Below, piece after piece: positions 2,227-57,849 of a stretch of 64,000 nt of DNA (position 1 is the first letter of the stretch; every line of letters begins with the position of its first letter). Both the position numbers and the translations under genes were made by a program. Source of the DNA: Dimorphilus gyrociliatus (taxonomy: Eukaryota; Animalia; Annelida). The stretch is from positions 240,892 to 304,891 of the forward strand of contig CAJFCJ010000046.1 in the NCBI GenBank assembly GCA_904063045.1, given 5' to 3'. The notes beneath the pieces are model-generated. The model saw only the letters and a program-made list of their open reading frames with translations. It made no database searches and was not told where the DNA came from.

Positions 2227-2386
2227 GGGGTTGATAGAAAACGTCCGCAAATGAGAATTTGAAGGGTAGACTTTGGATTTAAATATTGTTAGGAAGAAGA
2301 AGACAACTACTAATTTTTACTTAAGAGGGTTTGCTGTAAGGGTTAGGGTAATGGAAAAGGTTAGGTACATCCAAAGGCTGGGTTAG
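2227..2386 (+). mobile_element. MITE family A, truncated copy (left TIR plus body)
   Basis: Starts GGGGTTGATAGAAAACGTCCGCAAATGAG, matching the TIR of the complete copy at 53257-53463. Body GGAAGAAGAAGACA...GGGTTAGGG..TGGAAAAGGTTAGG is shared with the other copies. Confidence 0.7.
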
Positions 2387-2588
2387 CAACACTAAAAACT
2401 ACAAAACATTTCCAACTTGAAATAATGATACATTATGGATGATAAATTGAACAACAAACTTCCAGTTGTTGAGCAACATTGATTTCTGATCTTTCAAAAC
2501 TTTTCCAAACTTCAAGGATTTTTCTCTGATTGTTGCAAATTTTCTTTTCAGATAGAAGCTTTTCAAAGACATTTATCAGATCTGCGTC

Positions 2589-2850
2589 ATGTTTCAACTA
2601 TTTTACCATTCAGCGAAAATTTTCTCAATACAGCTTTTACAAAAGGAGAATAGGCACACTAGGTGCCATTATTCATTTTCTGTAAAAACTATATTCACCT
2701 TCAAAAATCAAATATGGCTACCAATACATTGTATTATAATTGTAGGAATATCTGGTTTGTCACAACAGTATTGGTCATTTGTAATCATTTACCAATTTAC
2801 CAAAGTACTCAAACAAATAGAACATTTTAAGTTTGTCCACAGATAGTCTT
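2589..2850 (+). pseudogene. Degenerate fragment, probably from an NLR-family gene (paralog of 19923-20150)
   Basis: IIIVGISGLSQQYWSFVIIYQFTKVLKQIEH aligns with IVIVGISASSEQYSSSSIIYQLSKVLKQIEP near 19990. It lies upstream of NLR-type LRR fragments. The family assignment is contextual only. Confidence 0.3.
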
Positions 2851-3330
2851 AAGATTTTAATACAAGGCCAAACAATCATAAAGGTTATATAATAAATTAA
2901 TAATTGATTGCTGTGCAATTACACGAAAGTAGGTCAAGCCTGCTAACTTTGACAGTTAAATCATGAATCAAAGATTCTTGCTCTTTATGAAAAACTGTAA
3001 TTTCCATTATTTGCGTGAACAGATCGTAAAGGATTCAATGATTGAACAAGAATATTATCTTTGATTGAATTGCTGTTTGAAATATTCAAAAGATAAAAGT
3101 GACCTTGAACTTTTAATTTAAATCCATATTCATTTTACTTAAAAATGATATATGTTTGTAAACATTCAACATAGAAAGATGTAGAGCTTGTAGGGCATTG
3201 TATAAAAAAATACACCTGACTATCAACAGATAAGACATTTTCTTTATATTCTCATCCATTTTTGGATAGTGTTAATTATGCTATGATTCGTTTAGATGAA
3301 TATTTAAATTGAGAAAAAAAAATGACCATA

Positions 3331-3795
3331 TCAATATCTGTTGAAAACGGCCAAAGTAGGTAAAAGTGGAGAGAAAGTAAAGAATTGGATTTTGTATAAA
3401 TAAGCCAAAGGGTTAGAAAATTGGAGAAAGTTACAATTGAGCGCGCTGACCGTTTTCAACAATATTCCCAAAATATCTACAGATTCATAAAATACTACAA
3501 ATTGTAAACCTTTTATGGCCAGTAGAGCTTCCGGTTGTGATACATTTGCTGAGTAATTGCTTTTTAAATGACAAATTTCATCTTTTAATGAATAGACAAT
3601 TGCCCTGCAGAGATAATAAATAGAATAGATGAAATATAGTAATTTTGTAGAGCGTCTTTCCTCATTAAGAGGTCTGCTGCTGCCTGTTGAATTCTTTAAA
3701 TAGCACAACTGCAATATTACTTTATAATCAATCCGTCTGCAATAATTAATAATACGAGATGAGCAAAAATTTGTCAAAGGCAAGCATTTTTTCAT
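3331..3795 (-). pseudogene. Possible rhodopsin-class GPCR fragment (TM5-TM7 region)
   Basis: Basic stretch RRSTKLL precedes a hydrophobic helix, followed by a TM7-like LNCNFLQFSNPLAYL. No N-terminal helices or DRY motif found. Confidence 0.35.
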
Positions 3796-3889
3796 TGTTT
3801 TTTTTCTTTCTTTTCAAACAAATTACATTACAATAGAAGATAATTAAACAGTTTTTTGAAAAGTGTAATTTAAACGAACAACAAATGTT

Positions 3890-5040
3890 TCTATATTGGA
3901 AAATTGTTATTAAAATGCCAAAGAATTGAAAATTTACACTTTGGAGGCAATTTCAATATGGGAAATGGATTATTGTGCATTTGCGAAGGTGTTGAATCGT
4001 TTGTAAACACTTTGAAAAGAATTCATTTCAATTGTTGTCATTTAGAAATATGGGAGATGATGGCCTACAGGAGATTTGGGAAGGCGTTAGAAAATCAGTA
4101 GCAACTGGTCACCTTTCGACGAAATATGGAATGAAAATATGAGCGACGGATTAATAAAACTTTGCAAAGGATTAGAAAAATCATCAAGTAACCTAAGAGA
4201 AATCTATATGAGATCATTAAATTTGAATAGGAACATACATATATCTAACAGTAAAAACTGGAAGGCTTGTTGCAGCCGATGTTGTTTTGCAGGATTGTTA
4301 TTATAGGCCTAATGATTGGGAAAATGCATAATGACTAGAAAAACTCCTGCTAAAGAATAAATCAAAGATTTCACTGACTGAAACATTAAAAATATAAAAC
4401 TATTATTGAGATTGGGAAATTGTATTCCAAGTTATTCATAAGATATCCGTTGATGAGTTTGAGAAATATTACAACAATCAATAAATTGTGATGAATAATA
4501 CAATCGTTTAAACAAAAATTGATGTTTTGTAGCCGCTGTAACGCTTATCTCGTTACTCATTGCGTTTCAAAACTGTAAATTTCTCTTCATCTTTTCCTTA
4601 CTTTGATGAACATGAAACACATAACTTTTTTTTCTTTTTGATCAACATTTCATCAATTCTTTTTATCAAGATAATTTTTGGCCTATAATCTGTAATGGAC
4701 TTAGGAAATCAGTAAAAAGTTTAAAAGAAATTGATTGTTCATATTGTGACTTTATGGATGAAAGTTGTAATAGGCTAACACAACTATTGAGTAAATGTTA
4801 AAAAATTGAAAAAGTCAATTTATCTTCCAATTTAATTTTAAATGATGAACTATTCCATATATGCAAAGAATTGGAAAAATCATCAAATACATTGAAGGCA
4901 ATTAGTTTTAGAAACTGTTGTTTTGACAATAAAACTTTTAAAAAAGTGCAAAAAACTTGAAAGTATTAATCTAAGGGAAAATAATCTCTCTGCTAAAGTT
5001 TGTATTGAATTTGAAAATGTATTAAATTCATTAAAACAAT
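3890..5040 (+). pseudogene. Degenerate NLR-type (RI-like) LRR fragments
   Basis: KCQRIENLHFGGNFNMGNGLLCICEGVE (3904-4101) and further stop-interrupted repeats near 4130-4230 and 4680-5040 match the LRR unit at 12912-13478. Confidence 0.65.
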
Positions 5041-5050
5041 GCATGATTTA

Positions 5051-5110
5051 ACCCTAACCCTAACCTAGCCCTTGTCACTCCCTAACCTTTTTGATTACCC
5101 CTGACCCTTA
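5051..5110 (-). mobile_element. MITE family A, partial copy
   Basis: ACCCTAACCCTAACCTAGCCCTTGTCACTCCCTAACCTTTTTGATTACCCCTGACCCTTAG matches the body of 53257-53463 in the same orientation. No TIRs seen. Confidence 0.55.
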
Positions 5111-5278
5111 GAATTAGAAAACTGCAAATTGACAAAGAATGTTTGTGAAAGGTTTAATAATCTTTTAATTAAATGTCCCTACCTTCAATTTTCAGTTTTC
5201 TCAAATTCTCCTAAAGATTTTTGATGTTAGCTGAAAGGAGAGAGAAAAGAAGATATTTATCATTTCAGATAGTTTTAA

Positions 5279-8200
5279 TCAGTGAAAAATTACCTTAAGG
5301 GCAAAAAAATCAATAAATTCAATAATTGTTATGACAGAAGCGCCTAAAACCAAACCTAAAAATCCACCAATTTCAGAGATGAAAGAGAGAAATGCAAATT
5401 TTTCTTGTTGTATTATCTTCTGAAAGCTCATTTCTTTGTAGAAAACATCAACTTTTGCAAAATTCCTTCTGCTTATAGCCAGTTTATAAAATGTTTCCAA
5501 AGAAGGAGAAATGTTAGAATCTTACCTGAAGAAATCTTTATCAACCTTTGAAATTTTATCAAATTCATTCAAAAAAAGTTGAAGGTCATTGAATTTGTTT
5601 AAAACGTCAATAAACGATTGTTGAGAAATGTTAGGAAAATCAAAATTGTGTGAAATCATTCCATATGTAAATTGTTTTAAACAAGTACTCCAAGTATATC
5701 CTGAAAAATTCTGCAATCTTTCTTTTGGACAATTAAGATTGAGATTATTTTCATTTTTCTTCTTATTAATTATTGAATAAACCTGATTTACATCAGTGTA
5801 TTGAATATCTGTATTGTCTGGATGTTTGACTGCAATTGGCCACATAAATATGAAATCAATATAATTTTCAATAACTGAAAGTTTTCTGGAAACTTTTTCT
5901 ATTGCATTTTGAAATGTTGACTTTTGTGATTGTATATTTTCATAGAAATTCATTAAACTGTTAATATTATCAAGTAAACAACTCAAACTGAAAGAATTTG
6001 ATAAATTAGCCTTTTTTATTGTGGAATTAAAATGTAAGTATGATTGAAATTGTTGAGTTTTAGTGAGAACCAAATGATGAATATCATAAAATGGTCTTAT
6101 TGATTTATGAAATTCTCCTAATTCAAAAGAAATGTCTTCTGAAAGAATTAAAAGTTCCCTTATTCTATTATCGATCTCAATGAATATTCTTTTGTTAAGG
6201 AGACAGTAGGAATCATCAAAGTAATTAATTTGATATAAACTCTCCTCCATGCTTAATAATGCTTTAACAGCAATATTGATCTTTGTTCCAATATTAGCAT
6301 AACTATCATTTTGAAATACAGTTGGAAATGTCATTGAATTTTCCATAAATGCTAGACTATCATAGAATGGATGACATATTGTATTGAATGGTATTTTTGG
6401 ATTACTTATATTCAAACCAAATATTCTTTCTATTTCTTCAATATGCATTTTCTCTAAAGTTTCTGCTTGGATTATGCTACTCAGTTGATCTTGAAAATCT
6501 TTTAAAGCTACACTCCAAAAGAGGCGAAAGTCTTTCAAATGTATTTTATATTTAGAAAATTTAAAATGTTTCATAAATCTACTGCAATCCATAATAAACA
6601 AACTTTCATTCATTTTGTGTAGATCTTTTATACAGTTTTCCAGATTGGTCAGCATCTCTTCCTTCTCTATTGAAACTGGTCCAAATAGGCCTGTTCTATA
6701 TTGATAAATCTTATTTGATTTAATACGTAGTTGTTGTCTGATATGTCTCATTGGATAAGAATCAAAAGACTCGGCCATTGTTCCAAAGTTTATCATAATT
6801 TTATATAAATCAAAGAAAATGGCCCTAAACAATGCAATATCTTCTTGATCAGTTAAAAACTGTCTAAAAGGACCATCGAGTCGTTGCAAGACAAAATATA
6901 TTTTTGTTGTAAATGGAGAGATTATTGCAGTATTTTTTTCAAAATTACTTTTAACCCTTCTTTCTTTAATTTCTAAAATTTTTGAAAATTTTTGTTTTAA
7001 ATCATTCATTCCAGTTGAATTTCCGTTTAATAGCTTATTGGCTGCAAATTCTGATATTGATGAAAATGAGAGATTAGGTTCATAAATAATTTGTGAACAA
7101 GGAACAGAACATGAACAATGTATATTTTTGTCATTTTGTACTTTTTCCAATGATGCTCTTACACATCCATATGTCTCTGATAAATTACAATACCTTTTAT
7201 CATTTTTTATAGCCCTTCCTAGGATGAGAATCGCTTCGAATGGAATACAGTGGCACATATCCGCTACCCAGCTTAACCGACAGTAATCTATACATTCGGC
7301 GTGCGATTTATATTCCGATTTCACACATTCTCCGTATGGATTACTGAGCTTATAAGATTCAATTCGCTTTATTCCAACAAGTGTATGCATTCCAGGCGCA
7401 ATTGCGAATCCCAAGTCCGCTATAAGCGGCTTTTTGTAATCGTCGTGTAAGACTATTTTTACACCAGCATTGTTAAAGGGTCCAGGCATGTGTTCGTATT
7501 GCTCAATGTTGAATAGAAAAGAGAGGGCATTAGCCATGCCAGATTCACCAATGCTTATGCCTTTGGTTTCATTCAGAGCAGATGGAGAATTGAATGTATA
7601 ACATACTCCATACTCGGTAATAGTTCTTGAAATGTATTCAGATTTACATGGTTTATTTGCCCATTGACAATCAAATATAAAATTAGATTGTCTATGCGCT
7701 GTGTAATTGAAGACAAATTCTGTGTCATATATAAGATTTCCAGGCAAGTTTGCATCATAGATTGATGTATTTTCATTAGAGTCAGAGTTGTAAATGTTGC
7801 TAATATATTCATATAAACCCAATTCAACAGTACTACTCATCCTTTTTATAGAAATAAATTATTTAATTAGTATCTCATTATAATATTAGATAAGGAACCT
7901 TATGAATATTTGATTGAATAGTTACTGTAGCATTTCTAACTTTATATAAAACACTAAACTATGAAAAGTATGAAATAATGTATTATTCAAAGCGTATTGG
8001 CTAAGCAGACTTCTAGATTTACCTGAATTTATTTTGGTTGCAGACAGTAACTGATGGAAATCCCAGACTTTTTGAGTATATCACTTCAACATTTACTGTT
8101 ACATCTTTCTTGTTATAGTCCATTCCTCTTCTTACAACTTGATAACAGAATAGAAAAATTGCTCCAAAAACAATAAATACCCATCCAATACGCCTAAATA

Positions 8201-8333
8201 ATGATGTTTCTTTGGCAAAGATATTCTTTACACCATGAAATGTTGTTTCTTTAGAGAAATCTGTCCAATTTTTCTCTCGTTTTCTCTTCATAGCCGAGTT
8301 TTTTGACGTTGGTTGTTCGCTCTGAAAGTCCAT
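5279..8333 (-). CDS. DEG/ENaC (amiloride-sensitive) channel subunit, 3 exons (8333-8023, ~7841-5526, 5468-5279)
   Basis: TTFHG gating motif, TM1, FPSVTVCN, GVCYTFN, Cys-rich thumb, and IGGFLGLVLGASVITIIEF (TM2 with GAS belt). GT..AG introns join in frame (NKFR|MSS; a 57-nt intron 5525-5469 gives DFFRRNFAKVDVFY). The exon 2 acceptor is weak. Confidence 0.93.
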
Positions 8334-8429
8334 AGATTGCCACAAAATTTAAACGTTTACTGAACGCTAAAGATGTATTCTAAATAATAACTTATTTAAA
8401 TATTTATACTAAAATAACACACTCTCTTT

Positions 8430-9493
8430 TCAGAAGGAAATGCTAGTGCATTTGCTGACATCATGCTATTTAAATAATTCATCAGGTGCACTTTGGATCG
8501 AGAGAATTACCTGTTGGCAGAAAAAGCATGGAGAGATTGAATATCCTTCATTTCTATTGTTTTCAAGACGTCTTCAGGAATGACAATGACTGACTTATAC
8601 TGCAAAGTTGAACTTTTTCCCCATATGGACATTATCTATGCTACATAGATAACTTTTGCATATATATGCTAATGGAGATCATTATTGTTACCTTGGTGAC
8701 TATGGAAATTCTTGTAAATTCTCGATTACGTAATGAAGATGAGAGATATTTTAAGTTGTCCATTTAAAATTTCCATCATAAGCGAATGATGTCCATCTTC
8801 AATTCAGATAAAACGATACTTAGTTGCGACGGAAGGATTATTAATCAAGATAATATTTGCGATCATAAGATTGATTGTCGTCATAAATCAGATGAGAATT
8901 ACGCAATATGTAAAGAAACATTCAAAACGAGAAATCTATCATTGAAATTACCAAATTACAATCAAATATTTTTCAAATAAAACTATCGCTATTTGGTGAA
9001 ATATTTCAAATATCAAATATGGATTATTCAATTGATTTAATTTCAATTATCATTCAAACAAATGATATTCGAGTGTTCAACTTTCAAAAATATCCCAATT
9101 TAATAATTGCAATATTAAAAAATGTTAATCTTGGGAAAATTGATGGAAACGACGCTCAGCATTGGAGATCTTCTCTTCTCAATTTATATTCTTATCATTG
9201 TACTAGCGGATATTTACTATGGTAACGACTACGTTAATTATGACGAAGTATGGAGAAACAGCACTAGTTGCCAAGCAATAGGCGTGATTGCACTATTCTC
9301 AATTTGTTTGTCATCAATGAGCATCCTTCTGCTGACTATTGAGAGAACTGATATAATTTTAAATCATGGTATTCAATCAGCATTTTTCAGGAAGAAAATC
9401 TTTGAACACTTTTCAATTGTATTATCTTCATTATGCATGGCAATCACACCAAAGATTTTCATTCGAAATGTCGAGAATTCAATAGTAGCATAA
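8430..9493 (+). pseudogene. Degraded GRL101/RXFP-like LDLa-LRR GPCR
   Basis: LDLa motif CDGRIINQDNICDHKIDCRHKSDENYAIC, then TM2-TM4 LSIGDLLFSIYILIIVLADIYYGNDYVNYDEVWRNSTSCQAIGVIALFS...TIER. The LRR block is missing and frames are broken. Confidence 0.7.
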
Positions 9494-10186
9494 GTAGTAG
9501 TCGAAAAACATTTAGAATAGTGCTTTACACACAAACATTGGTGAGATACTGTTCAGAGGATATTTGAATTTCACAACAAAGACTCACTAAGCAATAAACT
9601 CTAAATATTAGTGTGATTGTGATCTTTACCAGAACATATTAATTTGCAGTAGGATAGTGTTTTAGATGGTTTTTGCTCAATGTGTTCAACAATTGACAAA
9701 TTGTCCTGCATACTGCTCCAGAGAATGAAAATATCATAGAAGTTGATCATTAAGAAGAGTGCACGACAACTGAAATCTTACAATAAGATAGTATTAGTGT
9801 AGTTGATGCCCAAAATCAAATATAGTTCTTTACTGTTTACTCTGTAATTGTTTATATTTCCTTCAATACTGAAAATCGGTGGAAAGAAGCCATGGGATTT
9901 GATTGGAAAAAAATATTCATGGTTTTATGGGTATGCATCCTTGAACATGTGATGATAAGGCTGATAAAATGGGACATTATTTTTTGCACTTAATATTTGG
10001 ATTTCTAGGATTGTAAATGAAATAGTTGTCAGAGGATACAGTTAAAATTTAAGCCTATTTAGGGTGAAAATTTTTTTTGAAAGTGGAGAATTTTTACAAA
10101 ATATTCATTCTTTAATAGTAAAGGAAGGACTCGGATTAAAGTTAGATTCAACTTCACAAAGTTCAAAAATACCTGGACCAAAATGC

Positions 10187-12340: not shown

Positions 12341-12911
12341 TTTATTAAAAAAAACAGAAAAGTTATCAATATGTCTTCTTACACTGTGACACAAAACTAT
12401 ATTTAAGGAGCATTAATTATTTATATAGAAAATATAGAATAATTGTTTTTTTTTTATCAATTATAACATTTCTGTGAAACCTTCAATTCTTTAACTCTTA
12501 TTATTTGTTTACTGATGCTACTGTTCTCTATAAGTGATCTATATTTGGAATATAAACCAGTTTTAAAACAGACGCTAATGGGGAGCAAAAAGAGAATTTT
12601 AGATGTACTCTATTTTCTTTTTCTATATTTAATTGCAGACCTATGTGAAACAAATGTTTTTGGTTTGTATTTTAAAAAACTACCACTTTGAGAGCTACTA
12701 CAATCAAACAGTTTCATCTTTTACAGATAATGTAATTGGCTATGAAAAATATGAAAAAGTAGAGTCTAGAGGTGATGACTTGTGGCTACAAACATTTACA
12801 TCCACTACATACTTATCACCTCAATTTCTTTAAAACTAAAAATAAATCTATAAAAAAAGAAGAAATGCAAATAAATTGCACTAAATTGGAAAATTTAAAT
12901 ATAGAAGAGAA

Positions 12912-13590
12912 ATGTTTATTTCCTTCTGCATTTTTAAAATTTGTGATGCACTTGTCTGTTCTTCAAGAACATTAAGAGTTGTAACTTTTTCTTTTTGCAA
13001 TCTGACAAAGAATAAATCTAAAATGATTGGAAATATCCTTAAAATGTTTCCTCAGCTAGGAGTAATTAATCTAAGAGGGAATTACAATATGGGTGATGGA
13101 TTACTAGAAATTGGTGATGCACTTGAGCAATCATCAAACATATTAAGAAAATTAAACTTTTCTTTTTGTGATCTAACTGAAAATCAATGTAAAATGTTTA
13201 GAAATATTTTGAAAAATTATTCTCAGATTGAAGTAATTAATCTAAGTTTCAATAAAATGATGGATGATGGATTATTAGAAATTTGTAATGCACTAGAGCA
13301 ATCATCAAACAGATTAAGAGAATTAATTTTTTCTTGTTGTGATCTAACTGAAAATCAATGTAAAATTTTTGGAAATATGCTAAAAAGTTGTTCTATGATT
13401 GAAGTAATTTATCTAAGTGGGAATAAATATATGGGTAATGGATTATTAGAAATTTGTGATGGACTTACACAATCATGAAGCAGATTAAGAGAGTTAAACT
13501 GTTCAAACTGTCATCTAACTGAAAATCAATTTCAATTATTTGAAAATATGTTGAAAAATTGTTCTAGGATAGAAGTAATTAATTAAAATT
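12912..13590 (+). pseudogene. NLR-type LRR array without a visible NACHT domain
   Basis: Tandem 171-nt (57-aa) units start at 13095, 13266 and 13437 (GLLEIxDALEQSSNxLRxLxFSxCDLTENQCK...IEVINLS). A TGA at 13476-13478 interrupts a further repeat. Confidence 0.75.
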
Positions 13591-14524
13591 GGAATCATAA
13601 TATAGGTTCATTAATGCTTTTTACGAAAGTATCACAAAAAAACTACTATATTTATATGTCTGTTTAACTGGTATAGATACCTTTTAGATGATATTGTTGG
13701 TCAACTTCCTGCTGATGTTGCTATGGGTCATTCTTCTTTAATTAATAGGGAAAAGCTTACTTCTTTCCTTTTTTACTGTTTAATATCCTTTCTTGTATCC
13801 TTGTTAGGTAAAGCATAATCTAAAAAGGGTCAAAGCTTTTAAAAAAGGCAAAGACTTTATGTACAATGAAAACAAAGGACCAAAAAAATAACAATTAAAG
13901 AATTTACATCAATACTTCAAATTTTCCCTCTTTAATATTGATTTTTCAAAACAAACTCTTTCTTTGACTGAAACCATCATGATGAGGAAGGTATACTTTG
14001 ACTGCTTTAGATAATGGTTACAGACTGACAAGCTTTGCAAATGCATCTGCAATGTTCCATTATTATTGTTTTCAAATATCAATATATCTATACTTCTAAG
14101 TCTTCACCATGTTTTAGAGATACCCATTTATAATATTTACTGATTAAATCATAACAAGTTTACACAGACATTAACAATTTAAAAATTCACATATTTTTAA
14201 TTACATATCAAACATTCCACAAAATAGAAAACAAGAATTTTATGTTAAAATGATAATGAAGACAAAAATTTGAAATTTCAATACAATTTCAAAATGGCGT
14301 CGATAGGAAAGGTCAATAAACATGAAAATGCAAAGTTAGGTTAAGATTTGAAGTAAAGAATCTTCAAAATATACTTTCATTTTGACCTAGATTTTTGTTT
14401 TTAATGTAAACAACAACTGGAAATTGAAAGTGATAAATTCTCTTTTTTAGAATATAGATAAAACTTTAAAATACTAAAACATCAAATTAAATAATAAAGA
14501 TTACTGTTTAACCTATTTGAAAAA

Positions 14525-15377
14525 TTGGTAATGGAAAATCAATTATTTAATATCTGTCAAGAGCTTGAAAAATCCTCTAATACTTTAACCACAATTGATT
14601 TTCAACAGTGTTATTTAAATGAAAGGCTAAGTATACAGATTGGAAATTTTTTAAAGAATTGTTGCAGAATAGAATCAATGAATCTATGTGGAAATAGGAA
14701 CATGGGTATTGGATTATTGAATATTTGTGATGGATTAAAAAATGTCTTCAAATTCTTTAAAGAAACTTGATCTACAGAACTGTAATTTAAATGAAAAGCA
14801 AAGTGAAAAGATTGGATATTTACTTAAACACTGCTCCATATTAGAAACAATAAAGATATCAAGGAATGAGCTTAGAGGTAAAAAGATATTAAATATTTGC
14901 AAAGGGCTGAAAATGTCATCAAATACACTGAAAAATCTGGAATTTATATTGTGTTTTTTGAAAGAAGAACAAAGTAGAGAGATTGGAAACTTGTTACAAA
15001 ATTGTTGTAGAATAGAGACAAATAAATCTATCTTGGAATCAGAAAATTGGTAATGGAATATTTCATATTTGTGAAGGGCTGAAAATGTCATCAAGTACCT
15101 TAAAGAATCTCGATTTAGAAAGGTGTGATTTAAATGAAGAACAAGCTACAGAGGTTGGACTTTTACTAAAGCATTGCTGTAGATTAGAAACAATAAATCT
15201 ATCTTGGAATAGAGAATGGGTAATGGAATATTAAATATTTTTGAAGGACTTCAAATGTCATCAAATACTTTGAAGTGTTTTTATTTAGTCCATTGTGATC
15301 TAAATGAGGAACAAAGAACAGCAATTGGAGATCTGTTACAATATTTTCCCAAAATAGAAGTAAATCAACAGCAATAG
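14525..15377 (+). CDS. LRR-only NLR-like protein (~280 aa after correcting 1-bp indels); mirror copy at 25434-26285 on minus strand
   Basis: RI-like repeats GLLNICxGLKMSSNTLKxLDLxxCxLNEEQ. The left copy has extra bases near 14740 and 15020 and the right copy lacks a base near 26190, so the two arms together give one continuous ORF. Confidence 0.7.
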
Positions 15378-15620
15378 ATTACAAATGTATCTAGGTTTTA
15401 CCTTATGTAAGGCAATTAGCAATGGCTTAATTTGCATTTTGTTTATATATGGGCTCCACTTTTTGTAAAAACAATCTTTCAAAAGAAAAAAAAATCTATG
15501 ATATGGTTTTGATATTAAGAGGAATTCTTTTATTGAAGAGCTCATGATCTTAATCTTTTTCTCATCAACTCTCAAATCTAAATCTCCTATGAAGTACTTT
15601 TACAAATAACCCTAACCCTG

Positions 15621-15790
15621 AGGCTAGATTTTGGATTGAAATATAGTCAGGAAGAAGAAGACAGCAACTAATTCCTACATGGGAGGGTCTCCCCTTAAGG
15701 TTAGGGCTATTGGAAAAGGTTAGGTATAGTCAAGCTCTGGGTTAGGGCTAGGGTAAAAGCAGCAATTTATGGACGTTTTCTGTCGCATCC
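15621..15790 (+). mobile_element. MITE family A copy (left TIR lost); mirror at 25022-25191
   Basis: Body matches the other copies and ends with the TIR ATTTATGGACGTTTTCTGTCGCATCC. Confidence 0.75.
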
Positions 15791-15946
15791 TAAAGCTATC
15801 TGTTTTGTTGATAACATACTTTTTTTAAATCTTGCTAAGGTGCTAAATGAAGGAAGGAAAAGAGTTTAGATGATGAAATTATACAGAATGACAGTTTTTC
15901 TGTTTGAGTAAAACCCACTCCCTACCACTTTTAGGCCTTTTCTTAC

Positions 15947-17812
15947 CACAATTCACTTCATCATCACCAAGTGGACAGTGTTTCAATTCATCACAAACAA
16001 ATTTGATGTCAATGCAATATTGATATGTTTTACATCTGTATTGACAAAATAAACATTTCTTATGAATATTACAATTTACATGTTTTCCCTTATGTTTTGA
16101 AGAAAAGAATATTAATCTTTCCATACTGTCGTATTTTATCTCACATAATTCACTAAAATAAAATCATTTTTTACTAATACTCTTTACCAGGTTTCTCCTA
16201 CTACTTACGTAACATATGAACACTCATTTATTAATTGTTTTTTCAATTTCCTATCATAACAGATGTTCATTTGGGAATATTGAATAAATCCATAGAAAAT
16301 GCATTGCGAAATACCATCGCATACCGACCTACTTGGAATTCAATATCCATATTTACCCAAAAGATTTGAGAATGAAAAAGAGAAAAAAGAATGTTCTTGT
16401 GGGGGGTTCAATACCATTTTAAGGGTATGTTTTCTTGACTCATAATCATTCCTATCCCAGGAATCAATGATAGTCTTTTTATTAATTGGAATTGCAGTTT
16501 TACAGTATGCTAAATAATTTCTTTGTGTACAAGATGAACAGCAATTTCTGTAAACCTAACCCTAATGTACTTTGTATTTGATACTAAAATAAACGAATGG
16601 CTTCAATTCGAATCTTCTACTTTTAAAATTAAAATCTAAGAGCTTCAACTCTATTCTTGGCAAAAATCCAAAAACTCTTTGGAACAAAATCAATAAGATC
16701 TAATTAATTTACTTTTGAAAGAGATTGTAAATTGAATCCTTATGTATTCATCTCATTTTTAAATGGAATATTAGTTTACAATAGGTGTCGCTGCTCCTAA
16801 TTCCATATCCATTCGTTAGCGTATATTCTATAATATTAGTGGTTTTCTCTAAAGGTACGCAGGTGGAAGGATAACCTTCAAGTGTTGCGTAATACGAATG
16901 ACTTTTGCACTGCGTATCATAACTTTTCACCTTTTTTCCCTCTAGAAAAGAATGACGGATTAGATCTGAATGAATTATTGAAGTATCTTATCCCTACCGA
17001 TATCAGTTATGGCAAAGTGATTAATCCTATTGGTTAATCCATTCTTAATTAGTATTTGTCTTATGTCTAGAGTAATGGCGACTTCAATGCTATGAATATG
17101 AATGTTTCGTAGCCTTTACCCATACCAATTGTTATCAGTGTCTCTGATAATTCAATCCAAAAATTTGTCCAATCAGTGCAAGAGATCAATTTAGCAGAGT
17201 TGCTTAGAATTTTACTTTCAATTGTCGGATTCATTACGTGTATTGATGAAATTCTCTTATTGCCAATAATCTCATCCAGCCGAATTGTTGATATAATTGA
17301 AATTTCATTTTTTAGGCTAATTACCATTGTTGAACAATCATTCAGTTGACCTTGACCTTTAACCTTGAACCTCATAGCTCTAAAACCTAAAACCCTAATG
17401 AATATTCATACCTTTTGTAAAGACATTGACGTATTGAAATCCAACAGTTTCGTCAATGTAAACGTCTTTTATAACAAGATTTAAACCCGATTCTATATCA
17501 GGAGTATTTGTATATTTGAAACAATACATTTTAAAGCCAGCAACATCGGATAGGTTTACTACCTGAGTGAAACCAGAACTCCATTCGACCTTGACACTTG
17601 CTATCCTTTCATCAAAGTTGAGCCTGTTTATAAACAAAGTTGAATGGAAATGTCAAGTAAAGGAAATAGCATAAGACCCGTGTGATAAACATAAGAATTC
17701 CGTCCCCGTCTTCGACCAGAATACAAGTTAACCTACTCAATGAAATTGCTGTAGTATTGCAGTATTCCAAAAGAAATAGAAGGAAGGCGAAAGTTTTTGT
17801 CATAATTTTCAT
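15947..17812 (-). pseudogene. 5' half of a multi-exon LDLa receptor-like gene (signal peptide, FAMeT-like domain, LDLa); no LRR/7TM part follows
   Basis: Signal-like MKIMTKTFAFLLFLLEYCN; a Methyltransf_FA-like block (FKVKG..NDC...LISCTDWTNFWIELSETLITIGMG); LDLa YCIDIKFVCDELKHCPLGDDEVNC followed by gtaag, as in the GRL101-like gene at 44817-45167. Another LDLa exon (~16330) contains an in-frame TGA. Confidence 0.65.
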
Positions 17813-18677
17813 TGCAGTTCGCTTCTTTTCCATTTTGCAGGAGAATCTTTACATTTTTTTTTTGGAAAGAAGTCTTTATAAAGTTTTCTACAGCAATCGA
17901 TTGTTGCCATGGTTATTACCACTTTTAAAGCTAAGGCTATGAAAATAATTTTTCTAAATGATATTAATTAATAATCATCTTATCGTTATTGCAATTCAAA
18001 ACTTATTTACATTGGTTTCGTTATAAGAAATGTCATATGATCTCTCTTGAATTGCACCTTAAGAAAAGAGCACAATCATCAATTTCCATTAAGTATCAAT
18101 AGAGAAAAAAATCAATGAATAACAGACTAATTAAGAGTGTAAATACTATTACAAAAGTCCCGCCAACTCATTTCTTTTTAAGTAAACAATAAAGAGAAAA
18201 CAGCACTAAACCTTTTTGACCTGATTTTCGCTGACCTTTGTGACCTCTTAAGCCTTAACCTAATTTTCAACAGCAATGCCTTTATCGCAAATCTACTAAA
18301 GCTGCTAAAAGTAATATTTCATTTATCCTGTTTGAATGTATTATCCTTAATAATTCATACATTAAATTAGTAAAATTGGCTTTGTCAGCACTTTTTGAAT
18401 TCTATAAAATAAATCCTTTTTGAAAAGTTTCAATGTTGTTGTACAACTTTGGTTATATTTTACATGGTTGAACTGTATTATTTGATGCAACTTATACATG
18501 TCCATCTTAAAACCTACGCAAGAAAATGCTATAACATTGGGCAAACATAAGTCTGATTAGTCAGCTTCAAGGCTCATCTTTAATCACCAATAAAGGTTTG
18601 GCCAAGTTATAATTTAATTAACTTGCCTAGGGTGTGGCCAAGTTATAATTCAATTAACCTTCCTAAATCTTCAACCT

Positions 18678-19074
18678 TGTAACATCCTGTTACTAAACAT
18701 AAATATGAACTACACATTTCAGCAACTGTAAAGTGATGATTGGATGTTAGAGGCAAACCTCAGAGTAAATAAATCCTCACTATTCTCATTCTGCATGCGG
18801 CTTCCATCTGGATCCAAGGACCTGGGAAGATAACCTGGAAACAACCTCCACTGGAACCATCCATCTACTCCTCAACATTGGAAGACAGTTTGGTAATTTG
18901 GCAACCTGCTTTTACAAACTATCTACTCTGCTATTGAACTCTCATATTGTTACTTGCTTAAGTATTATCATTGCGAATAAACCATTTTAATTTAAACATT
19001 TGCTTAAAGGTTCGAGTAGAACCAGTATTGTTATAACTTGCAAACGCATAGGTTTTGCCAGCAAGAGCAGTACA
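18678..19074 (+). mobile_element. 5' LTR (397 bp) of a Ty3/gypsy-like retrotransposon; mirror at 21738-22134
   Basis: TGTAACA...AGTACA termini and AATAAA at 18976-18981, followed 4 nt later by a PBS and then a gag-like ORF. Confidence 0.75.
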
Positions 19075-19078
19075 AATT

Positions 19079-19096
19079 TGGCACAGTCGACAGGAT
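19079..19096 (+). promoter_or_regulatory. Primer-binding site complementary to tRNA-Ser(AGA); mirror at 21716-21733
   Basis: TGGCACAGTCGACAGGAT matches at 17/18 the expected TGGCGCAGTCGACAGGAT, the complement of the 3' end plus CCA of the tRNA at 40330-40411. Confidence 0.9.
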
Positions 19097-19134
19097 AATA
19101 TTTTGGTTTATTCAAAAATCTGGAGAAAGTAAAT

Positions 19135-19728
19135 ATGGCAGAAGGAGGAAATGGAAATGCCACTGGGGCAGTTACAGACTCTAACCCTTCAACCCCACCA
19201 ACTCCAACAATTGCAATTCAGCCAGCAGAAATGTCAGAAAGGCAACAAAGACTAATTGAAGACTATGATAGATTGGTGAGTGAAATGAAAAGAAATCGAA
19301 TCACAATTCCAACAGATCATGGAGATGGAACACATCACGCAGCACAGAACCCAAATGTTGATATCACAACAGTAATTCAAGCATTAAGGGCTGCTTGGGA
19401 CCGCCCTCAAAGAACTATTCTCAAGTTGCATGATGGAAGCAAGGAGTGTTCAAAATTCAAGGAAGACTTTAATCAGGCATGTGATGCTTATGGTTGGATT
19501 GGTGAAGATGTTGTGAAAGCAAGTCTTTTAGATTATTTAACTGGCCCTGCAAAGGATTTGGTGTTGGCTCTGGATGGAGAGCCTACTGTAGAGGAAATAT
19601 GAAAAGCCCTCCATGACGAATTTGATCTGGATCCCTTGGAGTATCAAGAGAAATTGCTTAACTTAAAGCAAATGAATGGCGAAAGTGTGGTTCAGTTTGT
19701 TAATAGAGCAGTACATTGTAAATATTAA
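19135..19728 (+). pseudogene. Truncated gag (Retrotrans_gag-like) with internal stop; mirror at ~21085-21677
   Basis: KFKEDFNQACDAYGW...LLDYLTGPAKD...EEI*KALHDEF...LKQMNGESVVQFVNR (MHR-like). TGA at 19600-19602 is probably a mutated Trp codon. No pol or 3' LTR. Confidence 0.8.
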
Positions 19729-22700
19729 AATATTGTTGTTGGATATTCAACCTTCTATACAGTAAATCAAGTTTGTATAAACATCTTGAAGCGTCATTTA
19801 ACAATTAACTTTACTCAGCACTTTAATTTTCTGTCTCTAGATGTTGCTTTTGTTGTATAAAAATATGGAAGTAAAGATTATATTCCAGATCTACTGAAAA
19901 TTCCTCTGCAATTGAAATTGCATTGAATGACAGCTCTATTAACTCCTACATGATTGATTTTTCAGTGGTTGTACTTTGTTGTATTGTAATTGTTGGAATT
20001 TCTCGCTTCTTCAGAACAGTATTCGTCCTCTTCAATCATTTATCAATTGAGCAAAGTACTCAAACAAATAGAACCACATGTGCCACTGCAGCAGAGGCCT
20101 GCCCAGCAGCATCTGGTATTGCCTAAGATGTAACAAATTTCACATGCATCTTTTCTGTGTTCTTTGTTAACTTCATAGTGGCTCCATCTAATATGGGCAA
20201 ACAATCTATTTCCTACGAAATAGAGTTCTTTCTAAAGTTCTATAATCTTATTCTAACGAAATAAAAGACTTTCAAAAGTTGCAGCATTATAATTGCCACA
20301 AAATAGAAGTTATTCTAAAAACCTTTATATTTGGTTCAACCCTAACCCGTATCAATATGCTTTCTGCTCAAAATATAAATTATTGTATTCTGTTAACTAA
20401 GATTTAACATTAAAGAGAATTGAAAAGAAAAAGATTTTGTATGTCTACACTTAGACATAATGACATATTGATATTTAGACTTTAGATATAAATGAACTTT
20501 AGAATAACTTCTATTTTGTGGCAATTATAATGCTGCAACTTTTGAAAGTCTTTTATTTCGTAGAATAAGATTATAGAACTTTAGAAAGAACTCTATTTCG
20601 TAGGAAATAGATTGTTTGCCCATATTAGATGGAGCCACTATGAAGTTAACAAAGAACACAGAAAAGATGCATGTGAAATTTGTTACATCTTAGGCAATAC
20701 CAGATGCTGCTGGGGCAGGCCTCTGCTGCAGTGGCACATGTGGTTCTATTTGTTTGAGTACTTTGCTCAATTGATAAATGATTGAAGAGGACGAATACTG
20801 TTCTGAAGAAGCAGAAATTCCAACAATTACAATACAACAAAGTACAACCACTGAAAAATCAATCATGTAGGAGTTAATAGAGCTGTCATTCAATGCAATT
20901 TCAATTGCAGAGGAATTTTCAGTAGATCTGGAATATAATCTTTACTTCCATATTTTTATACAACAAAAGCAACATCTAGAGACAGAAAATTAAAGTGCTG
21001 AGTAAAGTTAATTGTTAAATGACGCTTCAAGATGTTTATACAAACTTGATTTACTGTATAGAAGGTTGAATATCCAACAACAATATTTTAATATTTACAA
21101 TGTACTGCTCTATTAACAAACTGAACCACACTTTCGCCATTCATTTGCTTTAAGTTAAGCAATTTCTCTTGATACTCCAAGGGATCCAGATCAAATTCGT
21201 CATGGAGGGCTTTTCATATTTCCTCTACAGTAGGCTCTCCATCCAGAGCCAACACCAAATCCTTTGCAGGGCCAGTTAAATAATCTAAAAGACTTGTTTC
21301 ACAACATCTTCACCATCCAACCATAAGCATCACATGCCTGATTAAAGTCTTCTTGAATTTTGAACACTCCTTGCTTCCATCATGCAACTTGAGAATAGTT
21401 CTTTGAGGGCGGTCCAAGCAGCCCTTAATGCTTGAATTACTGTTGTGATATCAACATTTGGGTTCTGTGCTGCGTGATGTGTTCCATCTCCATGATCTGT
21501 TGGAATTGTGATTCGATTTCTTTTCATTTCACTCACCAATCTATCATAGTCTTCAATTAGTCTTTGTTGCCTTTCTGACATTTCTGCTGGCTGAATTGCA
21601 ATTGTTGGAGTTGGTGGGGTTGAAGGGTTAGAGTCTGTAACTGCCCCAGTGGCATTTCCATTTCCTCCTTCTGCCATATTTACTTTCTCCAGATTTTTGA
21701 ATAAACCAAAATATTATCCTGTCGACTGTGCCAAATTTGTACTGCTCTTGCTGGCAAAACCTATGCGTTTGCAAGTTATAACAATACTGGTTCTACTCGA
21801 ACCTTTAAGCAAATGTTTAAATTAAAATGGTTTATTCGCAATGATAATACTTAAGCAAGTAACAATATGAGAGTTCAATAGCAGAGTAGATAGTTTGTAA
21901 AAGCAGGTTGCCAAATTACCAAACTGTCTTCCAATGTTGAGGAGTAGATGGATGGTTCCAGTGGAGGTTGTTTCCAGGTTATCTTCCCAGGTCCTTGGAT
22001 CCAGATGGAAGCCGCATGCAGAATGAGAATAGTGAGGATTTATTTACTCTGAGGTTTGCCTCTAACATCCAATCATCACTTTACAGTTGCTGAAATGTGT
22101 AGTTCATATTTATGTTTAGTAACAGGATGTTACAAGGTTGAAGATTTAGGAAGGTTAATTGAATTATAACTTGGCCACACCCTAGGCAAGTTAATTAAAT
22201 TATAACTTGGCCAAACCTTTATTGGTGATTAAAGATGAGCCTTGAAGCTGACTAATCAGACTTATGTTTGCCCAATGTTATAGCATTTTCTTGCGTAGGT
22301 TTTAAGATGGACATGTATAAGTTGCATCAAATAATACAGTTCAACCATGTAAAATATAACCAAAGTTGTACAACAACATTGAAACTTTTCAAAAAGGATT
22401 TATTTTATAGAATTCAAAAAGTGCTGACAAAGCCAATTTTACTAATTTAATGTATGAATTATTAAGGATAATACATTCAAACAGGGATAAATGAAATATT
22501 ACTTTTAGCAGCTTTAGTAGATTTGCGATAAAGGCATTGCTGTTGAAAATTAGGTTAAGGCTTAAGAGGTCACAAAGGTCAGCGAAAATCAGGTCAAAAA
22601 GGTTTAGTGCTGTTTTCTCTTTATTGTTTACTTAAAAAGAAATGAGTTGGCGGGACTTTTGTAATAGTATTTACACTCTTAATTAGTCTGTTATTCATTG

Positions 22701-22997
22701 ATTTTTTTCTCTATTGATACTTAATGGAAATTGATGATTGTGCTCTTTTCTTAAGGTGAATTCAAGAGAGATCATATGACATTTCTTATAACGAAACCAA
22801 TGTAAATAAGTTTTGAATTGCAATAACGATAAGATGATTATTAATTAATATCATTTAGAAAAATTATTTTCATAGCCTTAGCTTTAAAAGTGGTAATAAC
22901 CATGGCAACAATCGATTGCTGTAGAAAACTTTATAAAGACTTCTTTCCAAAAAAAAATGTAAAGATTCTCCTGCAAATGGAAAAGAAGCGAACTGCA

Positions 22998-24865
22998 ATG
23001 AAAATTATGACAAAACTTTCGCCTTCCTTCTATTTCTTTTGGAATACTGCAATACTACAGCAATTTCATTGAGTAGGTTAACTTGTATTCTGGTCGAAGA
23101 CGGGGACGGAATTCTTATGTTTATCACACGGGTCTTATGCTATTTCCTTTACTTGACATTTCCATTCAACTTTGTTTATAAACAGGCTCAACTTTGATGA
23201 AAGGATAGCAAGTGTCAAGGTCGAATGGAGTTCTGGTTTCACTCAGGTAGTAAACCTATCCGATGTTGCTGGCTTTAAAATGTATTGTTTCAAATATACA
23301 AATACTCCTGATATAGAATCGGGTTTAAATCTTGTTATAAAAGACGTTTACATTGACGAAACTGTTGGATTTCAATACGTCAATGTCTTTACAAAAGGTA
23401 TGAATATTCATTAGGGTTTTAAATTTTAGAGCTATGAGGTTTAAGGTTAAAGGTCAAGATCAAGGTCAACCGAATGATTGCTCGTCGATGGTAATTAGCC
23501 TAAAAAATGAAACGTCAATTATATTAACAATTCGGCTTGACGAGGTTATTGGCAATAAGAGAATTTCATCAATAAGCGTAACGAGTCCTGCAATTTTAAG
23601 TAAAGTTCTAAGCAACTCTGTGACACTGATATCTTGCACCGATTGGACTCACTTTTGGATTGAATTATCAGAAACGCTTATAACAATTGGTATGGGTAAA
23701 GGTTACGGATCATTTATATTGGCTAGCATTCGAACGGCCATTACACTAGACATAAGGCAAATACTTATTAAGAACGGCTTAACCAATAAGATTAATCACT
23801 TTGCGATAACTGATACAGGTAGGGATAATATACTTTAATTAATTTATTAATTAAAGTGTATTCGCCATTCTTTTATAGAAGGAAGAAAGGTGAAAAGTTC
23901 TAATACACAATGCCAAAGTAACGCTTATTACGCAACGCTTGATGGACATCCTTCCACTTGCGTACCTTTAGAGGAAACCAGTAATATTATAGAATATACC
24001 CTAACGAATGGAAATGGAATTAGGAGCAATGACACAAACTGTAAACTAATATTCCATTTAAAAATGAGATGAATACATAAGGATTCAATTTACAATCTCT
24101 TTCAAAAGTAAATTAATTAGATCTTATTGATTTTGTTCCAAAGAGTTTTTGGATTTTTGCCAAGAATAGAGTTGAAGCTCTTAGATTTTAATTTTAAAAG
24201 TAGAAGATTCGAATTGAAGCCATTCGTTTATTTTAGTATCAAATACAAAGTACATTAGGGTTAGGTTTACAGAAATTGCTGTTCATCTTGTACACAAAGA
24301 AATTATTTAGCATACTGTAAAACTGCAATTCCAATTAATAAAAAGACTATCATTGATTCCTGGGATAGGAATGATTATGAGTCAAGAAAACATACCTTAA
24401 AATGGTATTAACCCCCACAAGAACATTCTTTTTTCTCTTTTTCATTCTCAAATCTTTTGGGTAAATATGGATATTGAATTCCAAGTAGGTCGGTATGCGA
24501 TGGTATTTCGCAATGCATTTTCTATGGATTTATTCAATATTCCCAAATGAACATCTGTTATGATAGGAAATTGAAAAACAATTAATAAATGAGTGTTCAT
24601 ATGTTACGTAATAGTAGGAGAAACCTGGTAAAGAGTATTAGTAAAAATGATTTTTTTTAGTGAATTATGTGAGATAAAATACGACAGTATGGAAAGATTA
24701 ATATTCTTTTCTTCAAAACATAAGGGAAAACATGTAAATTGTAATATTCATAAGAAATGTTTATTTTGTCAATACAGATGTAAAACATATCATATTGCAT
24801 TGACATCAAATTTGTTTGTGATGAATTGAAACACTGTCCACTTGGTGATGATGAAGTGAATTGTG
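22998..24865 (+). pseudogene. Mirror copy of the FAMeT-like/LDLa gene with a divergent version of two exons
   Basis: Identical translation to the left copy at 23172-23414 and in the LDLa exon apart from 1-bp indels, but heavily substituted at 23422-24039. Confidence 0.65.
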
Positions 24866-26355
24866 GTAAGAAAAGGCCTAAAAGTGGTAGGGAGTGGGTT
24901 TTACTCAAACAGAAAAACTGTCATTCTGTATAATTTCATCATCTAAACTCTTTTCCTTCCTTCATTTAGCACCTTAGCAAGATTTAAAAAAAGTATGTTA
25001 TCAACAAAACAGATAGCTTTAGGATGCGACAGAAAACGTCCATAAATTGCTGCTTTTACCCTAGCCCTAACCCAGAGCTTGACTATACCTAACCTTTTCC
25101 AATAGCCCTAACCTTAAGGGGAGACCCTCCCATGTAGGAATTAGTTGCTGTCTTCTTCTTCCTGACTATATTTCAATCCAAAATCTAGCCTCAGGGTTAG
25201 GGTTATTTGTAAAAGTACTTCATAGGAGATTTAGATTTGAGAGTTGATGAGAAAAGATTAAGATCATGAGCTCTTCAATAAAAGAATTCCTCTTAATATC
25301 AAAACCATATCATAGATTTTTTTTTCTTTTGAAAGATTGTTTTTACAAAAAGTGGAGCCCATATATAAACAAAATGCAAATTAAGCCATTGCTAATTGCC
25401 TTACATAAGGTAAAACCTAGATACATTTGTAATCTATTGCTGTTGATTTACTTCTATTTTGGGAAAATATTGTAACAGATCTCCAATTGCTGTTCTTTGT
25501 TCCTCATTTAGATCACAATGGACTAAATAAAAACACTTCAAAGTATTTGATGACATTTGAAGTCCTTCAAAAATATTTAATATTCCATTACCCATCTCTC
25601 TATTCCAAGATAGATTTATTGTTTCTAATCTACAGCAATGCTTTAGTAAAAGTCCAACCTCTGTAGCTTGTTCTTCATTTAAATCACACCTTTCTAAATC
25701 GAGATTCTTTAAGGTACTTGATGACATTTTCAGCCCTTCACAAATATGAAATATTCCATTACCAATTTTCTGATTCCAAGATAGATTTATTGTCTCTATT
25801 CTACAACAATTTTGTAACAAGTTTCCAATCTCTCTACTTTGTTCTTCTTTCAAAAAACACAATATAAATTCCAGATTTTTCAGTGTATTTGATGACATTT
25901 TCAGCCCTTTGCAAATATTTAATATCTTTTTACCTCTAAGCTCATTCCTTGATATCTTTATTGTTTCTAATATGGAGCAGTGTTTAAGTAAATATCCAAT
26001 CTTTTCACTTTGCTTTTCATTTAAATTACAGTTCTGTAGATCAAGTTTCTTTAAAGAATTTGAAGACATTTTTAATCCATCACAAATATTCAATAATCCA
26101 ATACCATGTTCCTATTTCCACATAGATTCATTGATTCTATTCTGCAACAATTCTTTAAAAAATTTCCAATCTGTATACTTAGCCTTTCTTTAAATAACAC
26201 TGTTGAAAATCAATTGTGGTTAAAGTATTAGAGGATTTTTCAAGCTCTTGACAGATATTAAATAATTGATTTTCCATTACCAATTTTTCAAATAGGTTAA
26301 ACAGTAATCTTTATTATTTAATTTGATGTTTTAGTATTTTAAAGTTTTATCTATA

Positions 26356-26361
26356 NNNNNN
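26356..26361. other. Assembly gap (6 N)
   Basis: nnnnnn lies exactly at the outer end of the right arm of palindrome 1. Confidence 1.
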
Positions 26362-27323
26362 TTGATCATTTTCAACTTCCGGTTGTTGCTTATGTTAATA
26401 AATAATTTGTTTTTGTGGAACGAGAAACTGTCTCTTGAATATTCTTTACTGAAAGTGTTCAGCTAATAGTACATTTTCATGTTTATTGACCTTTCCTATG
26501 GACGCCATTTTGAAATTTTATAGAATTGTTTATCTAGTCTTGATATCCTTTTTTAAATTGAAAATTCTTTTTAATTCATTTTTGTTGATATTTTGTTGGA
26601 TGTCTCACAAAATATTAGAAATGTCTGAATTTTGAAATGGTTAACATCTTTGTAAATTTCATTTTATTTAAAATAGAAAATATTGTAAACGGGTATATCT
26701 AAAACAAGGTGTTGACTAAGAAATAGTGATATATCGATTTTTAAAGGACAGATGCAAGATGTGACTAAATAAAAATTCCTGCAATTACAATACAAAAAAC
26801 TACAATAAGACTAAACATTACATTGTACAGAAGAAGCTTATTTGGCTGAAACCTTTTTTCAAATGGGGATATTTTTAGATTATCTTAAATGATTAGATGA
26901 TGTGAATGTTGCAGTAAAATTTTATATTCTCTGGGTTTTGGTTTTTAATATCCAAGTAGCACTTTATAAAGTTCTGGGTTCACTTTGTCAAAGATTTCTC
27001 AAGATGAAATAAAACAATGTCATATTCGATGCGTAACAATCTCACATTGCTCGTTTTCATTCCATGTTTAAGTAATACCCTTTTGCGATCTTTTTAGATT
27101 TGTTTATATGGATTATAGACTAATGAATATTCAATAAAAACAAAATGAAAATGAAACAACAATGGAAACAGAAAAAAATACTCCATAATTTCAAAATGGC
27201 GACAATAAAAAAATATTATTAGTGAAGAAGAGGTAAAGTGTTGAAATTGTTTAAAATTATGTATAGAGAATGTTCAAAGAATTCATTTTCTCAAAATGGC
27301 TGCCAATAAAGGTGTATATATTA

Positions 27324-54779: not shown

Positions 54780-55035
54780 GAGGTCTTTTAAAGGATGAAA
54801 AAGAATACCTTCTTGAAGCTTTCAACATTCCTCTCATTGTTTTGCTAATATCTACTTTTGATATAAAGAATATCCAATTTACCATCAAAACCTCACGTCA
54901 AACTTCTGCAGGCTATAATAACTCTTGCTCCCCTTTTGATGAAATCCGGTTCATTCTTTACCAATACCTGAATTATCTCCAGTAACTATAATGGTTTTCC
55001 TTCAAGTGAATGAGTTGACTGGCACATTTCATGTT
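54780..55035 (-). pseudogene. RDH11/12/13-like short-chain dehydrogenase remnant; mirror at ~62515-62770
   Basis: Frameshifted LEGK-TIIVTGDNSGIGKE* followed by GARVIIACRS, the N-terminal Rossmann motif of retinol-dehydrogenase-like SDRs. Confidence 0.65.
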
Positions 55036-55194
55036 GAGTTAGTCTGGAATGTTTGAATATTGAGTAGTATATAGACAATTAAAAGAAAAATTACTAATAA
55101 TTAATATATTCTTACGAAATTTCATCATTGGTTGCAGTTGCATCTTGTTTGTTTGTCACGTGGAACCAAGCTCCACCAATCGTTGTTGTTTGTA

Positions 55195-57439: not shown

Positions 57440-57780
57440 GGACATTCCCAAATTTTGAATATTCCTCCATCCAGCTTTATATCTTTAAATAGAATAAATC
57501 TTTCATTTTGGCAGCCATGTTTTAAAATATATTCAATCTCAGTAGTAAGTTTCTCATTGAAATCACAAAAACGTAAATCTAGTTTCTTCAAAGTGTCCAA
57601 TGACATTTGAAGTCCTTCACAAATATTCTTCACTCCACCACCCAATTCTTTATTCTCGCATAGAATAATGGATTCAATATGGGAGCAATGCTGTAGCAAA
57701 TTTCCAAAATCTGTCTACTTTGTTTTTCATTTAAATTACAAGAATGAAAAGTTAAATTTTCAAAGTGCTTGATGACATTC
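57440..57780 (-). pseudogene. NLR-type LRR fragment; mirror at ~59800-60143
   Basis: LQHCSHIESIILCENKELGGGVKNICEGLQMSLDTLKKLDLRFCDFNE matches the LRR unit. It joins unrelated sequence at both ends. Confidence 0.7.
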
Positions 57781-57849
57781 GAAGTCCTCGACAAATATCC
57801 GCTTTTCCTTTACCTATTTTTCTATTGCCAGTTAGATTTGTTTTTTCAA

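Follow-up and report, generated by a model that had tools for sequence, protein, structure and literature searches.

A diverged two-exon patch within near-identical inverted gene copies in the Dimorphilus gyrociliatus assembly

In the genome assembly of the annelid Dimorphilus gyrociliatus, two inverted arms of 5.9 kb each carry copies of one small gene, annotated in the right arm as DgyrCDS14548 (225 aa; P0003) and mirrored on the minus strand of the left arm, so that the copies lie head to head. The arms are near-identical everywhere except in one block of about 0.6 kb, which covers most of the gene's final two coding exons, along with the intron that separates them. How did so short a coding patch come to differ by 16% between arms that otherwise lack a single real substitution? 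The question is addressed here for a window comprising the terminal 64 kb of scaffold C46 (304,891 bp), the whole stretch of DNA analyzed. The explanation favored, at about an even chance, is that a real and old inverted pair was recently homogenized except for this patch.

The arms were compared by global alignment of positions 13800-20408 with the reverse complement of 20409-27000, and whole-assembly searches covered 77.9 Mb of D. gyrociliatus sequence. Exons were searched one by one, and their codons were joined only for estimates of nonsynonymous and synonymous divergence (dN and dS) and for local alignment. The analysis was made on assembly sequence. The DNA behind the assembly came from pooled adult females, and the pipeline consisted of PBcR, Quiver, Pilon, HaploMerger2, with which a haploid mosaic was built, and SSPACE-LongRead as the final step (PMC7854359).

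An old diverged block in young-looking arms

The left arm (14453-20319), the better-quality copy, aligns to 26355-20496, which is the right arm (20496-26355) read in reverse. Between them lies a central spacer of 176 nt (20320-20495) that is not itself palindromic, its halves failing to align as reverse complements. The assembly therefore presents near-identical inverted arms around a unique spacer, one mark of a palindrome kept alike by arm-to-arm gene conversion. A missed SMRTbell adapter was considered as the center and rejected, the spacer being ordinary AT-rich sequence, partly related to a transposable element (TE). Outside the block, no real substitution separates the arms over ~5,260 aligned bases; the differences there amount to about 26 one-base indels and one apparent substitution that adjoins a 2-nt gap.

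The diverged block measures 607 nt in the left arm (16781-17387, minus strand) and 618 nt in the right arm (23422-24039, plus strand), where its reading frame is intact. It holds 91 substitutions and four indels (one of 6 nt, one of 5 nt, and two of 1 nt), giving 84% identity, and differs sharply from the remaining arms (Fisher P=3e-91). A reading of the letters alone, made before this analysis and called here the sequence-only reading, had confined dense substitutions within the arms to 16781-17387 and 24039-23422, and pairwise alignment returns exactly these coordinates. That the block is the only diverged place is correct within the arms but not beyond them, since dense divergence (~78% identity) also appears outside the run of Ns, between 14067-14446 and 26750-26362. 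Differences are spread evenly inside the block, where the longest identical run of 29 nt fits uniform placement (P=0.37); its edges are therefore steps and not gradients.

These edges lie close to exon limits. The block spans the final 30 nt of intron 1, the whole of exon 2, intron 2 (56 nt in the left copy and 60 nt in the right) and exon 3 minus its last 33 nt. In the right arm, exon 2 occupies 23452-23818 and exon 3, with the stop codon, 23879-24072, the last 33 nt being the same in both arms. The left counterparts on the minus strand are 16998-17357 and, again with a stop codon, 16748-16941. Coding exon 1 (MYCFKY...FTK; 23280-23397 on the plus strand, 17412-17529 on the minus strand) is identical in both arms, even though it lies only ~25-55 nt from the block. 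Both edge sequences reported by the sequence-only reading are present: the acceptor tract at the inner edge reads TTTTAGGTTTTAG against TTTTAAATTTTAG, and the last difference falls 2 nt before a GT. The splice sites are not all kept, as had been claimed, because the GG>AA change at the inner edge removes an AG found only in the left copy. The annotated model of DgyrCDS14548 uses a different acceptor, common to both copies and 30 nt further in, and reads through the supposed next GT donor, reaching a stop 33 nt beyond it. The AG lost from the right copy would retain the 'FRAMRFKVK' strand, which is conserved in the family.

At its outer limit, the identity of the arms gives way to much older divergence. 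It ends precisely at a scaffold join of six Ns (26356-26361), past which 26362-26750 runs in register with 14446-14067 at ~78% identity, a divergence of 22%. An old inverted duplication with the same axis therefore exists. Weaker mirrored similarity extends several kb farther out from the arms, with matches of 58-76% between 12646-13561 and 29586-28934 and between 7855-7966 and 33572-33460. The arrangement suggests that the identical arms sit within a much larger, much older inverted duplication of LRR-type genes. Because the sequence farther out differs, the relation of the two outer flanks is one of paralogy and not allelism.

A piece of a TE provides a relative date for the identity. This 1.27-kb piece (18437-19710, plus strand, with a gag-like open reading frame at 19135-19602) recurs in the right arm at ~21103-22375, with no difference between the two arm copies, whereas more than 40 copies elsewhere in the genome match at only 95-96%. 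Some of the genomic copies carry a short inverted copy of the first 100 nt just upstream. Because the arm copies alone are identical, whatever equalized the arms is younger than the insertion and carried the element across. The outer flank at 78%, the block dS of 0.40, and this young piece common to both arms all place the duplication before the identity of its arms.

Divergence within the block is on the scale of the old duplication rather than that of the near-identical arms. Over 190 codons, dN is 0.09 and dS 0.40, a ratio of 0.23-0.28 by three methods that is equal in both exons, and 20% of the aligned sites of intron 2 differ. Both dS and intron divergence are of the same order as the 22% of the outer flank. 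In the block's first exon 21 of 126 amino acids differ and there is a 2-aa indel; in the next, 13 of 64 differ. Earlier manual counts agree, at about 22 with a 2-aa indel in ~126 and about 12 in 50. As the right block combines an intact frame with a dN/dS of 0.25, it represents real DNA and not noise.

The two versions have not evolved alike. When replacements are polarized against four outgroup paralogs, the left copy accounts for 15 of the 18 that can be assigned and the right copy for 3. Apportioned in the same way, dN is ~0.07-0.08 on the left branch and 0.004-0.02 on the right; dS against the outgroups is saturated (>2.8), which leaves only the dN split usable. A one-base deletion at 17092/17093 moreover puts the module exon of the left copy out of frame. 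The right version thus looks conservative and intact, and the left version relaxed or decaying. Neither a dN/dS above 1 nor a two-sided excess of replacements is found in this comparison of two sequences by a whole-block ratio. Module-specific diversification, proposed by the sequence-only reading, is not supported by a dN/dS of ~0.25 or by changes concentrated on the frameshifted left copy.

DNA and protein searches of the 77.9-Mb assembly found no near-identical copy of either version beyond the two arms. After the arms, the best DNA match has 74% identity across 134 nt, and at the protein level the closest relatives have identities of 55% and 51%. In a family of at least 66 modules, the two versions pair with each other as sisters.

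A truncated gene with a lectin-like module

Exon 2 encodes a module of ~125 residues, of which the D. gyrociliatus genome holds at least 66 copies, and an alignment of 19 paralogs shows conserved Cys, W..FW and G.G.Y positions. Compared directly with Pfam PF12248 (Methyltransf_FA), the module of the window gives no match at E<=10 and does not reach the gathering score, and just two of the 19 paralog modules match that family, the best at E 0.0027. A profile built from the 19 modules, by contrast with these single sequences, matches bona fide PF12248 proteins at E 1e-17 to 1e-12. The proteins matched include P0017, P0019, P0022, P0023 and P0024, which are invertebrate proteins with tandem Methyltransf_FA domains (PF12248 E 3e-66 to 3e-131). 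The description of this exon as FAMeT-like is upheld in this sense, with the module of the window itself below the Pfam threshold. Pfam searches of single exons and of long paralog reading frames returned only an LDLa match, and it was the profile search alone that identified the module.

The AlphaFold2 model of the module (predicted local distance difference test score 86) is a ten-strand beta-sandwich. Its nearest solved folds are the carbohydrate-recognition domains of galectins, a weak resemblance (template-modeling score ~0.6, E ~2e-3), and no Methyltransf_FA structure is among the matches. The module is FAMeT-like at the superfamily level, its core being a divergent Methyltransf_FA domain with a predicted galectin-like beta-sandwich. 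A role in binding carbohydrate or another ligand is a reasonable inference. In invertebrate PF12248 proteins, FAMeT-like repeats are often combined with lectin, fibrinogen or TSP1 domains. The worm module is linked to these proteins by profile homology (E down to 1e-17); unlike them, the worm family adds galactose-binding-like N-terminal domains and a private C-terminal domain containing Cys residues.

A full-length relative, DgyrCDS14776 (638 aa), consists of a signal peptide, two galactose-binding-like domains, the module, and the Cys-containing C-terminal domain. In the window copies the N-terminal domains are absent, as is the second half of the C-terminal domain, and the annotated product starts inside a domain. 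A search downstream of the gene for the missing second half gave no convincing match. The window copies are truncated family members and show no receptor architecture. No transmembrane or receptor part was found in the annotated product, and the secreted-type family members of 600 aa have no visible transmembrane segment, no transmembrane predictor having been run. A signal peptide, ectodomain modules, and a membrane anchor do not occur together in one reading unit. The receptor ectodomain envisaged by the sequence-only reading is accordingly replaced by a truncated product of 225 aa whose stop lies just after the block, with the LDLa exon beyond that stop and the LRR frames on the other strand.

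In a word search of public assemblies, the only entry recovered was the NCBI model DgyrCDS14548, in a cluster of one. Some annotated family members, DgyrCDS9666 (P0002) and P0009, are fused to transposase domains (Tc1-type; MULE plus FLYWCH). Such fusions are probably gene-model chimeras from transposon-rich neighborhoods.

Other features of the arms and their surroundings are coding or repetitive. The LDLa-domain exon lies at 15879-16124 on the minus strand, and its mirror at ~24690-24930 is frameshifted. On the plus strand, 14525-15377 is the terminal LRR-coding stretch of a neighboring gene of opposite orientation, mirrored at ~25435-26285. Tandem repeats of ~170 nt with 77-78% identity at 12927-13607 probably encode LRR units, belonging to the gene that has its terminal exon in the left arm. 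A dispersed repeat of ~170 nt at 15621-15794, perhaps a small non-autonomous element, occurs on many scaffolds in at least 15 copies, with identities of 83-87%.

Assembly quality and competing explanations

Much of what is known of the right arm counts against a homogenized pair in the animal. One-base deletions number 22 in this arm and 4-5 in the left, and an independent TE copy on scaffold C37 sides with the left arm at four of four sites, identifying the right-arm deletions as errors. Together, this excess and disagreement mark the right arm as a low-coverage consensus. The deletions break the right LDLa exon, and the arm terminates exactly at the six-N join. A second palindrome in the window (53543-64000; arms 53543-58578 and 59001-64000), which serves as a control for assembly behavior, reaches the scaffold end with its right arm and has 33 one-base deletions in that outer arm against 2 in the left. 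Another at the start of C37 (C37:1-10000, ~640-10000) has 54 deletions in the outer arm against 7. All three palindromes show zero real substitutions between their arms, a pattern that fits a copy artifact better than biology. The use of HaploMerger2, which splices one 'allele' onto another by design, weighs in the same direction. Conversion edges that both fall within ~30 nt of coding-exon limits would moreover need selection or luck, and selection on these edges lacks a positive dN/dS signal while one of the copies looks broken.

The other palindromes have features of their own. The spacer of the second palindrome is 422 nt long and contains the end of a C1q-like exon. At the center of the palindrome on C37, near 5320, two copies of one transposon family lie head to head. 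On C35 (C35:1-10000), an inverted repeat of 98.7% identity at 7596-10000 is centered near 8798, near the scaffold start, and is cut by the end of the stretch. Two of the 20 scaffold starts sampled are palindromic.

These observations give substance to an assembly mosaic, a serious contender that nonetheless appears somewhat doubtful. Here the right version of the block would be a real old paralog, and its letter-identical surroundings in the right arm a fold-back or collapsed copy of the left arm. The source would be a few chimeric or misplaced PacBio reads at a contig end, or the merging of haplotypes, with the product later joined in register to the true right flank. Such an origin would account for a right arm with ~5x more one-base deletions that stops at the six-N join, and for the same outer-arm asymmetry and scaffold-end position in the second palindrome and at the start of C37, with palindromes at 2/20 scaffold starts. 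The arms are centered in multi-copy TE sequence, where unitigs tend to end, and the assembly measures 78 Mb against an estimated 71-74 Mb. HaploMerger2 yields haplotype switches, and its authors caution that these can be excessive. Palindromic chimeras are a recognized class of long-read artifact, reportedly described for long-read libraries in the Pacasus paper (PMC6218980). The outer arm does lie at a scaffold end with lower consensus quality, as expected of a fold-back; however, a simple hairpin read would make the arms identical throughout and leave no unique center, where this locus has a block of 607/618 nt at 84% and a spacer of 176 nt. The non-palindromic spacer is unlike a simple missed-adapter hairpin. 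The fold-back tail would also have to end by chance at the exact base where the next contig resumes the old homology, and a switch between alignment blocks would be expected to run through exon 1, which is identical ~25-55 nt away. An indel-free zone around the right block could point to anchored short-read polishing, but the 357 and 406 nt free of indels there are uninformative, since an error-free stretch of 1.3 kb occurs elsewhere in the arm. The published methods report no whole-genome amplification. No nameable step would duplicate the left arm, in register, to either side of a clean, in-frame, uniformly diverged block of 618 nt, and none yields the spacer, this block, the in-register join, and the identical exon 1 together.

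Two other origins for the block were suggested alongside conversion by the sequence-only reading, and both fare worse. Two deeply diverged haplotypes might segregate in the culture, haplotype merging having placed one allele in each arm. Pooled females and a haploid mosaic prone to switches would permit this, and flanks free of substitutions are what alleles of a laboratory culture should show. It is nevertheless quite improbable, as the block is no more diverged than the outer flank of the old duplicate, itself a matter of paralogy, and each version occurs exactly once in the assembly, at mirrored positions. A difference of 16% limited to 0.6 kb with razor-sharp edges would itself need explaining. 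More improbable still is a young inverted duplication, perfect but for one arm that received a two-exon cassette from a third paralog. The large family (>=66 modules) offers donors in principle, but whole-assembly DNA searches with both versions match only the two arms, and the next relatives (74% in DNA over 134 nt, 55% and 51% in protein) are separated by a saturated dS of >2.8, compared with 0.40 between the arms. Since the versions are sisters with no near-identical copy elsewhere, donation is disfavored, and the old diverged flank argues that the duplication is not young. Of the three explanations first offered, conversion that homogenized everything except the block remains the best.

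The favored history, homogenization of an old inverted pair, would begin with an old inverted duplication holding two head-to-head truncated genes for a lectin-like, Methyltransf_FA-type secreted protein. A transposon piece would have landed beside one copy, after which nearly the whole 5.9-kb unit of one arm presumably overwrote that of the other. The likely route is repair synthesis or gene conversion between the arms, in one discontinuous event or in two. The 0.6-kb patch, made up of the final two coding exons with the intervening intron, would retain the old divergence, spared perhaps by selection against converting the intact copy, by patchy mismatch repair or by chance. We infer that the identity of the flanks is present in the animal's DNA, with conversion as its putative cause. 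The history includes the sub-case in which the pipeline flattened a true difference of a few per cent between the arms. An island kept apart by selection within a real palindrome under ongoing conversion is a more specific proposal, and an unlikely one.

Parallels and meaning

Palindromes of the human Y-chromosome ampliconic regions and of primate X chromosomes undergo arm-to-arm gene conversion. Like the locus described here, they consist of gene-bearing inverted arms around a unique spacer, the similarity of their arms exceeds what the duplication's age would permit, and at the outer boundary there is a sharp step to older divergence. The worm arms differ in measuring 5.9 kb, in containing an internal 0.6-kb patch that keeps the old divergence, and in being known from the assembly alone, with one arm of low quality at a scaffold join.

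Concerted evolution with unconverted islands occurs in the primate L/M opsins and in RHD/RHCE. There, as in the worm, homogenization of the paralogs takes in introns and some exons but leaves a short coding stretch diverged. The island in those genes coincides with sites of proven functional difference, whereas the worm block has a dN/dS of ~0.25, changes lopsided toward the frameshifted copy, and a truncated gene around it. Models that combine gene conversion with selection are said to have been developed by Innan and Teshima. Long-read fold-back chimeras and inverted duplications at contig ends resemble the worm arms in having an outer arm at a contig or scaffold end, a poor consensus, no substitutions, and recurrence within the assembly. 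The arms of such chimeras are identical throughout, usually with no unique spacer, in contrast to the 176-nt spacer, the clean foreign block, and the in-register old homology of the worm locus.

If the arms are an assembly mosaic, the locus is a warning that, in a reference in wide use, many 'perfect' gene palindromes have one poor arm and lie at the ends of contigs. Such palindromes would need a check against reads before they are used as biology, in counts of gene families or in accounts of excess assembly size. A diversifying receptor module is not supported whichever of the two accounts is correct. If the patch is an island held by selection, the worm would maintain two distinct forms of a glycan-binding-type module within homogenized mirror genes, providing a compact spiralian example of selection-limited conversion at exon resolution. 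If the homogenized pair is real, it would represent a clean, small-scale case of patchy concerted evolution, in which the recent overwriting of an old inverted gene pair ran across a transposon insertion and spared a single coding patch. It would then offer a dated before-and-after view of conversion tracts in the genome of a spiralian whose palindromes appear to be unusually numerous.

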